Shown piece by piece: positions 31,062 to 61,711 of a stretch of DNA of 64,000 bases. Positions within the stretch are counted from its first letter, which is position 1. Every line of letters begins with the position of its first letter. The translations under genes were made by a program, and so were the position numbers. This DNA is from Macrostomum lignano. Lineage: Eukaryota. The notes beneath the pieces are model-generated. The model was not told where the DNA came from and did no database searches. It was given only the letters and a program-made list of their open reading frames with translations. The DNA lies in assembly GCA_002269645.1 (NCBI GenBank), contig NIVC01000363.1:434001-498000 (forward strand). The letters run 5' to 3'.

Positions 31062-31340
31062 ATGCCATCAACAAAGAGTTTTCTATTGCCAACGCTTCTG
31101 CTGCTGACTGCTGTCTGCGTCCTGTCCGTAGATGGATACGCTTCGATCTGCTCTGAACCGAGCTCCGCCTGCCCCACCGACTGCAGTGAAGACTTGGGTA
31201 CAGCGGTTAGCAGGTGCCGGAGCTGGAAAGGCATTTGTGGGAAAACCGCTAGCGACTGCGCCGCTTGTGTTCGATGCAGCTACCAGGCTTGCAACGCTGG
31301 AAACACTCCGCACATGATCTTATACGAGTACTGCTTTTGA
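31062..31340 (+). CDS. Secreted 10-Cys peptide P1 (uncharacterised family), 92 aa
   Basis: Hydrophobic signal MPSTKSFLLPTLLLLTAVCVLSVDG, then C-x6-C-x3-C-x10-C-x6-C-x6-C-x2-C-x2-C-x4-C-x13-C-F*. Three paralogs in the window. Acceptor-like tttaaactcgcag 8 nt before the ATG; AATAAA at ~31479. Confidence 0.85.
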   Translation: MPSTKSFLLPTLLLLTAVCVLSVDGYASICSEPSSACPTDCSEDLGTAVSRCRSWKGICGKTASDCAACVRCSYQACNAGNTPHMILYEYCF

Positions 31341-31780
31341 TAATTCTGGCAGATGGTCTTACGAGTTTTGTTCTTTGGATTTGTTAAAATGAGATGCTGA
31401 GGTATCAGACACAGATATACAGTAAGTCAGGAGTTTTGACGAACTTTCGTTGGCTAATGCGAATTTTCCATCTTTGGGAATAAAACGAACGGCATGTGAC
31501 TTGCGGAAACGAGTTTGTGTCTTCCTTTGTTCATTTTTAAGAGTTATTTTTATCTGCGGTCAATTTTTAACCCGTTTTGACAACAGCTGAGCAAGTTGTC
31601 AGGGGCACAGACCTCAGAGCCTCAGCGTTCATGTAGGATTGTTTACGGAGTGGAGAGACTCGGGGTTGTGTAGCTGGAATATTGCAGTTTAGCTCTGACC
31701 AATTCAGATTTTTTTAGTAAGTACCCGAAACTATTTTCAAATATTGCAGACAATCATAGTCCTGTCTTTAGGTGATGTAA

Positions 31781-32372
31781 AAACATTCCCACCAGTGTGT
31801 TGGAAGAACATTCCCACCAGTGTGTTGGAAGAACATTCCCACCAGTGTGTTGGAAGAACATTCCATCAATGTGTTGGAAGAACATTACCATCAGTATGTT
31901 GGAAGAACATTACCATCAGTGTGTTGGAAGAACATTACCATCAGTGTGTTGGAAGAACATTACCATCAGTGTGTTGGAAGAACATTACCATCAGTGTGTT
32001 GGAAGAACATTCCCACCAGTGTGTTGGAAGAACATCCCATCAGTGTGTTGGAAGAACATTACCATCAGTGTGTTGGAAGAACATTACCATCAGTGTGTTG
32101 GAAGAACATTACCATCAGTGTGTTGGAAGAACATTACCATCGGTGTGTTGGAAGAACATTACCATCAGTGTGTTGGAAGAACATTACCATCAGTGTGTTG
32201 GAAGAACATTACCATCAGTGTGTTGGAAGAACATTCCATCAATGTGTTGGAAGAACATTACCATCAGTGTGTTGGAAGAACATTCCCACCAGTGTGTTGG
32301 AAGAACATCCCCATCAGTGTGTTGGAAGAACATTCCCATCAGTGTGTTGGAAGAACATTCCCATCAGTGTGT
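31781..32372. repeat. 25-bp minisatellite CAGTGTGTTGGAAGAACATT(A/C)CCAT, block 1
   Basis: Direct read. Confidence 0.95.
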
Positions 32373-33127
32373 TGTGACGTTGTCAGTTTAAGGTGGTCCC
32401 GAAAAGGGCCGCTGGACTATATTTTCCCTTGTAATTTCTCATATTAATTTCTCCAATAGTTTATTTTAACGTTTACTTATAGTAGAGCCCAACGATTTTG
32501 TGGCAATTTCTAATTCACTGTATATTTTGCTATCCTCTCTCGCGACTGTATAAAATTGGCACGATCGATAATTTTAAGTTCTCTCGCCAGCCAATGAAAA
32601 CCACTCGTGCTTCGCGCTACCCCCCTCTGCGCTCCTTTATTAAACCCCCCGCCTGGCGGCGGCACTCCTCACTCCCGTCCTTATCTGTGCTTCTCTCTTC
32701 CTCCCGGCCTGTCCTCGGCCTTGTTTTCCTTCTCTCTGTCTGGGCCAGCCTGTTTACACTGCCTGCCACTGTCTGCCACGGCTAACGCCAATCTCACCAC
32801 TACGCATCTGCCACTGTTGTACTCATCGCCGTTACTCACCACGTTGCATCGTCTTGCATCACTCGCCTACCACTCGACTACAATCTCTAACTCACCTTCA
32901 AGTCAAAACCATTGTTGCAGCCGCCAGTGCCCCAAAGCGCAATAAGTTCTATATTGATATTAACCGCATCGAATATTGATCTCAACAATAATAACCAACT
33001 ACGGCCAGTTTCCGGCCTTGTATGCCAAGTGCTCCGCTACACAAATCCGCTATCAAGACTTGACTCGATTCATTTGGGACTAAAACGGCCCTTTTAAGGG
33101 TCACGGACAACATCAAATAACGTGACA
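32373..33127. mobile_element. 755-bp insertion with TGT...ACA ends and 4-bp TSD (GTGT): probable solo LTR
   Basis: Starts TGTGACGTT and ends AACGTGACA. Flanked by GTGT (32369-72) and GTGT (33128-31). It splits one 25-bp unit. Internal TATAAAA at ~32548 and a CT-rich tract. Confidence 0.7.
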
Positions 33128-58545: not shown

Positions 58546-59447
58546 CCGAAAGCGCTATATTTTGGCGCTCTAAAGAAAAATTGATTACCACAACGACTCC
58601 ACAAGGTGGGGTGGGGGGACAAAGCATGGGCATGTCATCACAATACATTAATTGCCAACTCAAGTTATTATAGTAGTGCTTGATAAAAACAGAAAAAGAA
58701 GGAATACTAGCTTCTACGTCTGCTGCCCATGCATGGTCGAGTCGAGAGGTCGAGTATCCGAATATTTTTATTAGAAATTAATAGCTTTTCTTACCTTGAT
58801 TGGCTGTTGGCTCCAACCTATTTTTAAAAGTTACACTGCAAATATAAACCCACAATTATTATTTTTGAGGTCTTTGTAGGGGGATTTTATACAAAAGAAT
58901 TCTTTCGTCACAACTACGCTCGAAAGCACAATTTTTGGAGAAATAGCTAGAATTAGCTCAAAGTGTTACACTTTGAAAAGTAGAAGGAGCCTCTTGAAAA
59001 TCGTAGATTGAATTTTGCTCAATTTTTTAGCTCTTAGCTAATTCAAAATCTGAAGATTTTGGATGGATCAAAATGGTTAGATTTTAAAAAGTTTCTACGG
59101 ATTTAAATTGGAAATTTAAAACTTTGACATTTTGAAATTCAATACTTTCGCGTGTCCGCTGCAACTGTAGTGGTTAACAAAAACTTCTATCCGAAATTTG
59201 AGCTGTGAACGAAATTCAATACTTTTTTGCATGGTGTCATACGAAACTTCTGGCAATCATGCAGCAAGCAGCACTTCTAAAGTTCACTTGACATACAAAT
59301 GTCACTCAATCTCTGCTCAAACAGGCGTCAATAGAGGGTCAGTACTTTTATATATTTAAGGTAGTAATTGAGAAAAATAAATTTATGCAGAAACGTCTGA
59401 TTACGAATATGACTTGGTGCAAACGGGTATAGCTTTTTGCAGCCCAT

Positions 59448-59958
59448 TTGCAACTGTTGCGGAAGAGCAACAGATCAGCCCCAGAATTGTGGACCAGATG
59501 CTATAGGCTGTCAAACCAATGCCATTCACTTGTGATCGAAGCACTCGACAGAGGTGAACACCCAAAGTACATTGCAAGGTTGCTGAATGTAAAAGAAAAT
59601 ATGGTTTACAGCATCCATCAACGCGTTGAAACTCTGCCGGCAGAGATTGCCTGCGAAAGGCTGGCAATCGCCAATGCAAGTTGCTCGAGAGCATCAGGTC
59701 CAACTGCTACTCGATGCATTTGAGACGAACCGTTTGTTGATGTTGCAGAAAATGCAGAAGAAGTTGAAGAAACAGTTCCAGTTTGTTATCAGTTTTCGAC
59801 TATCAGCAGAGCTCTGGAAAAGCGACCGAAAATCGTTCCTAGAGACGCTGATATTCCAGCGGTACGCAACAACCTGCAGACGGTTGCGAGAAGGCAAGAG
59901 TTTGCCGACTGGCTCACGAGCGTTTGGACCAAAATTGATGCTTGTTGGACCAAATTAA
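59448..59958 (+). pseudogene. Possible IS630/Tc1/mariner transposase N-terminal (HTH) relic
   Basis: Overlapping frames LVIEALDRGEHPKYIARLLNVKENMVYSIHQR and LLMLQKMQKKLKKQFQFVISFRLSAELWK resemble the two HTH segments of ITm transposases. No TIRs or DDE region found. Confidence 0.4.
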
Positions 59959-61429
59959 ATGCCGCTGTGCCAGCCTTTGCTACCATAGACAAAAGCTCCG
60001 TTACATTGGCAAACGTATACTCGTATTAGATTAAACTCAATACAGCTATTGTCTGTGTCCCTAACCCCTGGGTTTTCTCGCTGCGGCCAAGCGGCCGCTA
60101 AATGCACTAGCGAGTGCTGGAGTGACACATCTAGATAAATACGAGTATAATCTGTGGTGCAAACTGCCTTTGATACATATTGCTATACGTACTGTATATC
60201 AAAGGCATCTGGAAATTTGATCAGTTTAAAAAAGCATTTGATTTGATCACATGCACGCAGGAGCTATACTTCCTTGTACATACAGCTCTTGAAATAGGTA
60301 AAAAAAACAATTATTGCACACAGATAGATGAAGGCTGCATAGAGAGCATCTTCCAGATTGGATTGTATCAAGAAAGGTAACTGTCTCTCTTTTACATGTA
60401 AGCACCTTCTGCCCACGGCCAGTGCTCGAGTCGAGTGCCAGTGCCATGTATAGCATTTTTTAAAAGCAAGTGGTTGTTGATGACTCATGGTCCTTAAGGG
60501 ACGTACTATGTACTGATAAGAACGTTTTCTCTGTCAGGTTGCCTGTTCCAGCTATTACAAGCTTACCAATGTCTTTTGATGTCTTGGTTGGCACCCCCGC
60601 CCCTTTCTCCAAGGCCATCGTGTCCAAGAAGGGGCAACAGTTGAGCTTTTTTATCATAGGCAGGGGGCTGTGTGCACAACCGAGGCGAGAGGCATTACTA
60701 CCCATTCCGCCGACTCCCCTGAGCAGGCACACAAGCGCGCGGATACGTACGCAGTCATACGCACAGGTACACACACACAGGAGTGTACATCGACCCTCGA
60801 CCCAAACTTAATTAATCGTTAGGCATGTACACTTCACTGTGCCTTGGGGGTTGGCCTTCAAGAGCGTTAATTTAACGAGCAGAGCCCAAGCCGATATTCT
60901 ACAATTTGGCCCCAAATTAATGTGACTGCACTTGGAATCGAGCCTGGACCGCTGGCACATCAGAGCGCCGCCCCGGGACCGCTAGACTACGCCCCTCCCC
61001 CTAAAATTTGAGTCCTTTGCGTAGGCCAGTAGATAGTTTAAAAATTGCTGTGAATCAAGATAAAGTTAGCATCACCCTTTATGAATTAAAAGTATCAACA
61101 TAACTTGACACAGGGTGCCGCCATCTCAAGACGTTGTGTAGAAGTGCTAAGAACTAAAACATGCGCCGCACTAAAACAAAGTCGCCCAGGCCTATTTGAC
61201 CGTAGTTAAAGAAATTGAAGGCAATCTTTTTGGCTTTTAATTTATGCCGTGTTCAGCGTCTGCTCACAAAAATTTTATTTTTCAGGGAATAATAATTCAA
61301 ACCATAAAGTCGTTTTAATAGTCTTTTTGAAATTAAACAATCAGCAAAAGGATCCCGAGCACCGCAGCTGTTTATTTAACTCATCCACTGACCACCTGAT
61401 CTCAATTGGAAACGAACCGAATTTTTCTC

Positions 61430-61711
61430 CTAGTAGCAATAGGTGAAGATGTCGTAGTCCTGCGGATCAGAGCCGACTTCACAGGCTGAGAAGGCGCATT
61501 TCAGACAGTCAGCGCACCAGTCTGGCGATTTGCCGCAGTGTCTCCTTATCCTTTTGCACATGTTGGCAGTGCTGGCTAGAGACTTGCAACTGCTTGGGCA
61601 GGAGTATTCTGAACTGTCGCAGTCAACTTTTCCGCTTACCGACGAGAAGCAGACAATAGCCAAGCAGAGAAGGATTAGCAGTGGAGCCAGAAGACCGGCG
61701 GCAGGTTTCAT
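61430..61711 (-). CDS. Secreted 10-Cys peptide P4, 93 aa
   Basis: Signal MKPAAGLLAPLLILLCLAIVCFSSVSG. Framework C-x6-C-x3-C-x9-C-x6-C-x6-C-x2-C-x2-C-x4-C-x14-C-Y*. Shares CPSSC, DWCAxCLxCAFxAC and PQDYxIFxYCY with P3. Acceptor-like tttcaacag 1 nt before the ATG. Confidence 0.87.
   Translation of the reverse strand: MKPAAGLLAPLLILLCLAIVCFSSVSGKVDCDSSEYSCPSSCKSLASTANMCKRIRRHCGKSPDWCADCLKCAFSACEVGSDPQDYDIFTYCY

Follow-up and report, generated by a model that had tools for sequence, protein, structure and literature searches.

A tandemly duplicated family of predicted secreted ten-cysteine mini-proteins in the flatworm Macrostomum lignano

INTRODUCTION

A stretch of the genome of the flatworm Macrostomum lignano (GenBank assembly GCA_002269645.1, contig NIVC01000363.1, positions 434,001 to 498,000 of the forward strand) carries four short open reading frames (ORFs), here named P1 to P4, each of which reads as a signal peptide followed by a small, cysteine-rich protein. 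We refer to this whole stretch of 64,000 nucleotides (nt) as the window. The original prediction, made from the letters of the DNA, was that P1 to P4 may form an undescribed family of secreted effector peptides with a fixed disulfide scaffold. The locus thus raises the question of whether these ORFs are genuine genes, how far the family extends, and whether it is a family of its own or a divergent branch of a known one, such as the ShKT domain. Our analysis favors, at a probability of roughly 0.7, a family of its own, restricted to Macrostomum and duplicated in tandem, whose members are helical, disulfide-rich peptides secreted as ligands or effectors. The fold is predicted, and secretion, disulfide formation, and ligand function are inferred.

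RESULTS

Four paralogous genes share a cysteine framework

All four ORFs translate exactly from ATG to stop at the positions that had been claimed for them. See Table 1 for the coordinates of all features. A mechanical count of the mature parts of P1 and P3 gives the framework C-x6-C-x3-C-x10-C-x6-C-x6-C-x2-C-x2-C-x4-C-x13-C, and P4 differs from it only in having x9 for x10 and x14 for x13. The C-terminal tails are aromatic in all three (F in P1, YY in P3, and Y in P4). The spacing and the aromatic end proposed for P1, P3, and P4 were thereby reproduced, and the loop sequences quoted along with them were also correct. P2, which the original prediction had implicitly set apart, indeed has a deviant framework, C-x3-C-x15-C-x13-C-x2-C-x2-C-x4-C-x13-C-x1-C-C, in which two scaffold cysteines are gone and an extra C-x-CC tail is gained. 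Which pair is missing depends on the alignment (MAFFT), being either the CPxxC cysteine and the fifth cysteine (C5) or the first cysteine (C1) and C5.

Pairwise blastp comparison joins P1 to P2 at E = 5e-23 (45% identity) and P3 to P4 at E = 6e-26, with values of 1e-7 to 1e-17 between the pairs. The likeness of P1 to P4 is not a chance pattern. A tblastn search across the window found no additional copy or pseudogene beyond the four, and among the 97 ATG-started ORFs of at least 60 amino acids in the window, the only others that are equally cysteine-rich are translations of minisatellites. The alignments and the framework together support what had been proposed of these precursors in general, namely that they are of the secreted type and have a fixed cysteine scaffold with divergent residues between the cysteines.

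Table 1. Features of the ten-cysteine gene cluster. Positions are those of the window unless locus L002 is named.
Feature	Position	Strand	Basis
P1 gene, single-exon coding sequence, 92 amino acids	31062-31340	+	Translation ATG to stop; ten-cysteine framework
P1 signal peptide	~31062-31136	+	Sequence reading
P1 mature 67-amino-acid ten-cysteine domain	31137-31337	+	Sequence reading
P1 splice-acceptor-like CAG, 8 nt upstream of ATG	31051-31053	+	Sequence match
P1 poly(A)-signal-like hexamer (AATAAA/ATTAAA)	31479-31484	+	Consensus match only
25-bp minisatellite arrays after P1	31782-32374 and 33128-33855		Tandem Repeats Finder (TRF); repeat-derived ORFs
P2 gene or possible decaying paralogue, 92 amino acids, with signal peptide	35198-35476	+	Translation
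P2 acceptor-like CAG	35187-35189	+	Sequence match
P2 poly(A)-like hexamer	35573-35578	+	Consensus match only
Similar minisatellite array after P2	~35705-36115		TRF
P3 gene, single-exon coding sequence, 90 amino acids	57315-57587	-	Translation; ten-cysteine framework same as P1
P3 acceptor-like CAG	57595-57597	-	Sequence match
P3 poly(A)-like hexamer	57195-57200	-	Consensus match only
P4 gene, single-exon coding sequence, 93 amino acids	61430-61711	-	Translation
P4 mature 66-amino-acid ten-cysteine domain	61433-61630	-	Translation
P4 acceptor-like CAG	61713-61715	-	Sequence match
P4 poly(A)-like hexamer	61371-61376	-	Consensus match only
Window edge, cluster runs on beyond	63700-64000	-	L002 14934-20300 equals window 64000-58634 at 100% identity
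P5c, intact, 101 amino acids, ends ~130 nt beyond position 64000	L002 14506-14811		ORF reading
P5b, 99 amino acids, outside window	L002 11729-12028		Called gene
P5a, 99 amino acids, outside window	L002 10001-10300		Called gene

The cluster extends beyond the window and recurs on other contigs

The count of four family members describes only the part of the cluster that falls inside the window. At least seven paralogues are present at the locus, since three more (P5a, P5b, and P5c) lie past position 64000 on the same strand as P4. The order is P5a, P5b, P5c, P4, P3, then a gap of ~20 kb, and, on the opposite strand, P2 and P1. Contigs NIVC01000218.1 and NIVC01001750.1 carry the cluster again at 91–100% protein identity and may be alleles or homeologues. 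By gene, the P1 copies on loci L001 and L005 are 91–92% identical with all cysteines kept, the P3 copy on L004 (BOX15_Mlig003746g1) is 94% identical, and the P4 copies on L003 and L004 are 96% identical. The blastp paralogy and the comparison of contigs both bear out the local tandem duplication that had been proposed.

The genes are already deposited. Family members carry BOX15_Mlig names as hypothetical proteins, P4 being identical to one deposited protein (P0001 in our protein collection), and the NCBI annotation calls five paralogue types as genes, with P5c not called in this assembly. The family profile also matches a MetaClust protein of 101 amino acids (P0015), which is probably P5c.

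The seven paralogues have intact reading frames

P1 to P4 and P5a to P5c are real protein-coding genes, intact and paralogous, with conserved cysteines. All seven have an open reading frame in each copy, free of frameshifts and premature stops, and the scaffold cysteines are all kept between copies. Divergence between copies is 2.1–3.7% in the coding sequences and mostly 8–12% in the 350-bp flanks. Among paralogues, the ratio of nonsynonymous to synonymous substitution rates (dN/dS) is 0.29–0.60, at synonymous divergences (dS) of 0.75–1.9 that are near saturation. Between copies of the same gene, nonsynonymous to synonymous (N:S) differences number 8N:0S in P1, 6N:4S in P3, 4N:2S in P4, 0N:2S in P5b, and 1N:1S in P5c. 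The excess in P1 alone reaches P = 0.12 and justifies no claim of positive selection, and the ratio of nonsynonymous to synonymous polymorphism (pN/pS) in P3, P4, and P5 is 0–0.56. The original prediction had called the loops hypervariable and the products effectors. With a dN/dS of 0.3–0.6 and a pooled pN/pS indistinguishable from neutrality, both terms keep the status of inference.

The gene borders also have common features. A splice-acceptor-like CAG lies within 18 nt upstream of the ATG in 7 of 7 paralogues and at 16% of the window's ATGs overall (P ~3e-6); in the paralogues it usually follows a pyrimidine-rich stretch. These matches suggest that the CAG is the acceptor of an intron in the 5' untranslated region, or else a trans-splice acceptor, placed before an uninterrupted coding sequence. 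M. lignano is known to trans-splice. The poly(A)-signal-like hexamer follows the stop codon at 56–141 nt in the window genes and at 56–211 nt across all seven.

Protein features and the predicted fold

The precursors are 90–101 amino acids long and their mature parts 66–74. Each N-terminus has a hydrophobic core (mean Kyte-Doolittle hydropathy over 10 amino acids of 2.6–3.7) and then a small-x-small site (VDG, ADA, GSS, or VSG) that directly precedes the first cysteine; these signal-peptide features were read from the sequences. In the same reading, the family sequences showed neither additional hydrophobic segments nor a KDEL-type tail, and the dibasic and amidation sites typical of neuropeptide precursors were absent. 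Without such processing sites, a neuropeptide precursor is disfavored. Six of the seven paralogues have a mature net charge of about 0 or -1 (P2 has +4), and a charge so close to neutral speaks against a classical cationic antimicrobial mechanism.

AlphaFold2 models of two members are three-helical. The P4 model has a predicted local distance difference test score (pLDDT) of 84.3 and a predicted template modeling score (pTM) of 0.68, with helices at residues 18–32, 36–49, and 58–65. The P1 model has a pLDDT of 80.8 and a pTM of 0.68, with helices at 20–34, 38–51, and 59–66 of the mature chain. Because the two models agree, the three-helix topology appears reproducible. The invariant motif CAxC[VL]xCA[FY]xAC, which holds four of the ten cysteines, is placed in helix 2 and its C-terminal cap. 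A helical fold had been suggested from the CxxCxxCxxxxC periodicity alone, and both models put this motif inside a helix. As for the remaining cysteines, two are in helix 1 (i, i+7), three in the N-terminal coil, and the last in helix 3. Conservation is highest in helix 2, the G..P turn, and the aromatic C-terminus, and variation is concentrated in the N-terminal loops and helix 1.

The P5 type departs from this pattern in one cysteine, which is shifted from CPxxC to "SKC." P5b has eight cysteines rather than ten, as the "SKC" cysteine and the third cysteine of CxxCxxC are lost together, and its protein is identical on all three contigs. P5b is a natural "disulfide knockout" that appears to be tolerated, and we read the paired loss as evidence that these two cysteines may be disulfide partners.

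Database searches return only M. lignano members

A word-seeded profile search of 5.8e9 clusters and an exhaustive hmmsearch of 1.84e9 representatives returned only M. lignano members. Five extra hmmsearch matches (P0007 and P0009–P0012; E = 1e-3 to 1e-5) were rejected as translations of low-complexity tandem repeats. Running hmmscan against Pfam-A with the seven paralogues gave nothing relevant at E<=10, and a match of Late-nodulin over the P5a signal peptide was dismissed as sub-threshold (16 bits against a cut-off of 30.4). A sequence search of the PDB with the family profile found none below E = 0.1. Foldseek searches of the PDB with the P4 and P1 models had best E values of 3.2 and 2.8, and a search of BFVD with one model gave none below 2.5, all hits being generic helical fragments. 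The lack of a curated family match that the original prediction expected is thus borne out. The further claim of an undescribed lineage-specific family held in part: only M. lignano sequences were found among billions, and yet the genes are on deposit as hypothetical proteins, with three types automatically named as ShKT proteins. No paper in the searchable literature on Macrostomum ShK proteins, cysteine-rich proteins, seminal fluid, or single-cell work ties to the family genes; the deposited genes are covered by neither a curated family nor a paper in that literature.

Tests for an ShKT domain

The ShKT domain is ~35 amino acids long, has six cysteines paired C1-C6, C2-C4, and C3-C5, and is detected with PF01549 at E<0.05 (PMC6409789). 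We found no ShK match to PF01549 at E<=10 in any of the seven paralogues; the ShK toxin itself, as a control, scored 19.4 bits (E = 0.0016). Aligning the family profile to a profile from a verified alignment of ShK toxins with hhalign gave a probability of 0.08% over one aligned column. Unfiltered hmmsearch between the family and ShK toxins reached no more than 1.2 bits, and at most 3.7 bits with both directions counted; the control profile is a narrow one, built from seven toxins that are all cnidarian. A regular expression for the CxxxCxxC terminal triplet matched 0 of 7 family members and 5 of 5 control toxins, the family having CxxCxxCxxxxC instead. No ShK, BgK, CRISP, or MMP23 chain was returned at E<=10 by the PDB sequence search or by Foldseek, which was run with two models and is weak on a core of ~30 residues. 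On present evidence, from sequences and models, membership of the family in ShKT or in another curated family cannot be demonstrated.

The P2 segment, repeats, and neighboring genes

P2 differs from its paralogues in more than its framework. The protein collection has no exact match to its sequence, it is unannotated, and a segment of ~3.6 kb that contains it is absent from both other contigs (L001 and L005), where the region 10279–11100 jumps from just past P1 to the equivalent of window position ~36.0 kb. In the window, this segment (32400–36020) also holds a 25-bp array and a remnant of a DDE_3/Tc1-mariner transposase (33934–34167, minus strand). The arrays that follow P1 and P2 are part of a ~4.1-kb duplication unit, and their length differs between contigs. 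An array-mediated deletion or a collapse in the assembly could account for the missing segment. Because P2 is only 45% identical to P1, at a dS of ~0.75, its absence elsewhere would be a loss or an assembly collapse and not a recent gain. Deviant, unannotated, and missing from two contigs, P2 may be decaying.

Other repeats of the window are a 21-bp minisatellite unit (CTCATTTTAGCGCCGCAGGCA, rotated), found at 28234–28853 upstream of P1 and at 58014–58548 between P3 and P4. Its translation yields cysteine-rich pseudo-ORFs (MSACGAK repeats) that can be mistaken for cysteine-rich genes. The unit has the same orientation at both sites although the gene pairs lie on opposite strands. We considered an inverted segmental duplication as the origin of P1/P2 and P4/P3 and rejected it, both on this shared orientation and because identity within the pair (45%) exceeds that across pairs (~30%). 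Long minisatellite arrays with units of 18–30 bp occupy 12000–16000, 37600–38400, 40000–42600, and 48300–50200; they have extreme GC or AT skew (up to 0.36), take up a large share of the window, and produce many long spurious ORFs. A search of both strands of the whole window against Rfam gave no family at the gathering threshold.

The ~20-kb gap between P3 and P2 holds kinase, acyl-CoA oxidase, leucine-rich repeat (LRR), and other sequence. A 380-amino-acid ORF with a protein-kinase domain lies at 53673–54815 (plus strand), between the cluster halves. The adjoining region at ~47300–51300 shows homology to a gene for acyl-CoA oxidase that is annotated on L004. These housekeeping-type genes part the two halves of the peptide cluster. 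A 191-amino-acid LRR ORF lies at 42622–43197 (plus strand; LRR_4, E = 5e-9). Outside the cluster, exons of a Sec23/Sec24-family COPII gene at 19294–24921 (plus strand; Pfam zf-Sec23_Sec24, Sec23_BS, Sec23_helical, and Gelsolin) match a 1029-amino-acid gene annotated upstream of P1 on other contigs, and an LLC1-domain gene is annotated downstream of P1 there.

DISCUSSION

The family is a lineage-specific set of tandemly duplicated, secreted, disulfide-rich mini-proteins, a well-known kind, with a predicted fold that has no detectable neighbor. Several points weigh against reading it as a Macrostomum-restricted family of its own. Other Macrostomum genomes lie outside the protein sets searched, so "species-restricted" may mean genus-restricted. 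The AlphaFold2 alignment had only nine rows, and the disulfide map was not read from the model. Between copies, the pooled pN/pS of 0.61 does not fall significantly below 1 (p = 0.26) in a test of low power. No transcript, proteomic, or in situ record could be linked to the genes; neither their gene IDs nor their peptide strings occur in the searchable literature, and the tables of Weber et al. (2018), which list RNA815 transcript IDs and pre-2017 BLAST hits, could not be mapped to the family. Lastly, UniProt and UniRef give the P1, P4, and P5a types the automatic name "ShKT domain-containing protein," with P3 and P5b "Uncharacterized"; we assume that this label originates in PROSITE PS51670.

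The last point leads to the strongest alternative, a divergent and extended ShKT domain. Its six-cysteine core would begin at the CPxxC cysteine and end at the third cysteine of CxxCxxC, the four further cysteines would tie the N-terminal extension to the C-terminal helix, and the products would be blockers or modulators of K+ or other ion channels. Besides the automatic names, this would fit the paired cysteine loss in P5b, which matches a staple of the C1-C6 type (the other two bonds are not established by it), the P5-type loops, whose lengths (x6, followed by x12 ahead of the C-terminal triplet) are similar to those of ShKT, and the helical nature of ShKT domains. Members of that group (PF01549, PS51670; ShK, BgK, aurelin, nematode SXC, MMP23, and the CRISP ICR) are likewise small, secreted, and disulfide-rich and often expanded in invertebrate lineages, and the staple from the N-terminus to the last triplet suggested by P5b would be a further likeness. 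However, the Pfam, hhalign, hmmsearch, PDB, and Foldseek searches showed no signal, and none of the seven proteins has the CxxxCxxC signature. The family has ten cysteines in 66–74 amino acids, as against six in ~35–40, and its CxxCxxC(xxxxC) triplet sits within one long, regular helix in the models. The label is also inconsistent among clear paralogues, which suggests a borderline automatic score. The original prediction excluded ShK on spacing; our tests agree in that they detect no ShKT signal, but the UniProt label conflicts with that exclusion, and a distant ShKT ancestry is a real possibility that we consider, on balance, unlikely. The opposite proposal in its most specific form, that an undescribed five-disulfide, three-helix fold unrelated to ShKT arose and expanded in Macrostomum and serves as a rapidly diversifying set of secreted ligands, such as seminal-fluid allohormones or channel-directed peptides, we would place somewhat short of an even chance.

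Two further alternatives concern the genes and their cysteines. If the ORFs were chance ORFs, decaying pseudogenes, or annotation artefacts, the missing expression record, the deviant and unannotated P2 that two homologous contigs lack, and a pooled pN/pS not significantly below 1 would fit. Yet seven paralogues on up to three contigs each are intact, with scaffold cysteines kept despite a dS of 0.75–1.9 and coding sequences less diverged than their flanks, and the signal peptide, acceptor site, and poly(A) hexamer are conserved and the AlphaFold2 models confident, so we regard this as very improbable and, for every gene but P2, as effectively refuted. The cysteines might instead bind metal in a cluster like that of Zn2Cys6 proteins, as the best PDB sequence matches were GAL4 and LAC9 peptides sharing C-x6-C-x6-C-x2-C (E = 0.11–0.5). 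These E values are not significant, and we take the likeness in spacing as coincidence. The first C-x2-C of the Zn2Cys6 pattern (C-x2-C-x6-C-x5-12-C-x2-C-x6-8-C) is absent from the family, there is no basic DNA-binding region, and the signal peptides of all members point to the oxidising secretory pathway. Metal binding of this kind is barely credible.

Some other systems invite comparison. The C-terminal domain of CRISP proteins (PF08562, hinge plus ICR) also packs ten cysteines into ~55–60 residues, and its ICR part has an ShK-like fold and modulates ion channels. Its spacing differs, however, and the family precursors of 90–101 amino acids have no upstream CAP domain; the Crisp Pfam model gave no match at E<=10, and no CRISP chain appeared in the sequence and fold searches of the PDB. 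Euplotes pheromones and Aplysia attractin are water-borne protein pheromones, small, secreted ligands of two or three helices stapled by disulfides, species-specific and fast-diverging. They resemble the family as an analogy of design only, since the exhaustive searches showed no sequence relationship, cysteine number and spacing differ, and the organisms are unrelated. Membership in the CS-alpha/beta defensins or macins was rejected, as the models are all-helical without strands, the net charge is about 0, and no Pfam model matches.

The role of the family can be discussed in graded terms, given that it is one of secreted ligands or effectors. A reproductive, seminal-fluid, or other gland secretion acting on conspecifics and a defensive or ion-channel-directed peptide are about equally plausible, each possible at odds well below even. 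An endogenous signaling ligand is quite unlikely and an antimicrobial role improbable, with what is left falling to structural or other roles. The narrower proposal of prostate-secreted, fast-evolving seminal-fluid proteins that affect the mating partner as allohormones agrees with either reading of the structure. It has a precedent in M. lignano, in which prostate-limited transcripts are mostly short and often without BLAST hits, 38 of 65 having signal peptides (PMC5977470). The set Mlig-pro1-76 (Weber et al. 2018, PMC5977470) comes from the same species and shares with our family the short length, the many signal peptides, and the lack of BLAST homologues. The lineage restriction and tandem duplication of the family fit this proposal, as do the eight nonsynonymous and no synonymous differences in P1. 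On the other side, no member maps to any Mlig-pro transcript and no identity between the two sets is established, the P1 count is not significant alone, P3, P4, and P5 show no such excess, and many other gland types of M. lignano secrete orphan proteins too. We consider a prostate origin rather unlikely. A role in antimicrobial or other defence of the epidermis or gut, like that of macins and defensins, would fit multi-copy, divergent genes with secreted, disulfide-rich products, which are typical of invertebrate host-defence peptides. The near-neutral charge of all but P2, unlike that of cationic antimicrobial peptides, and the all-helical predicted fold without a beta-sheet, unlike that of CS-alpha/beta defensins and macins, make this improbable as well.

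Under our preferred reading, that of an independent family of secreted ligands or effectors, an uninterrupted coding sequence behind a splice or trans-splice acceptor would give a signal peptide and a mature protein of 66–74 amino acids. This mature protein is predicted to fold as a compact bundle of three helices, with five disulfides to lock it and with the helix 2 motif and its four cysteines as a covalent hub. Such a mini-protein would probably be stable to proteases and heat in the extracellular space. The variable surface of the N-terminal part and helix 1 may bind the target, and duplication may have diversified its specificity.

Invertebrate genomes commonly have secreted, cysteine-rich families of their own lineage, and the finding is incremental either way, with no sign yet of an unusual mechanism. 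If the family is a derived ShKT domain, it would illustrate domain drift, to ten cysteines and a changed C-terminal triplet, so far that the Pfam model no longer detects it. If instead the predicted fold holds and is independent of ShKT, the family would add a new compact, helical, five-disulfide scaffold to the few architectures of disulfide-rich mini-proteins, scaffolds that are of interest in toxin and peptide engineering. It would likewise offer a clear example of how a taxonomically restricted family of secreted proteins is born and expands, in an organism that serves as a model for sexual conflict and for the evolution of seminal fluid and in which RNA interference, in situ hybridisation, and transgenesis are feasible.

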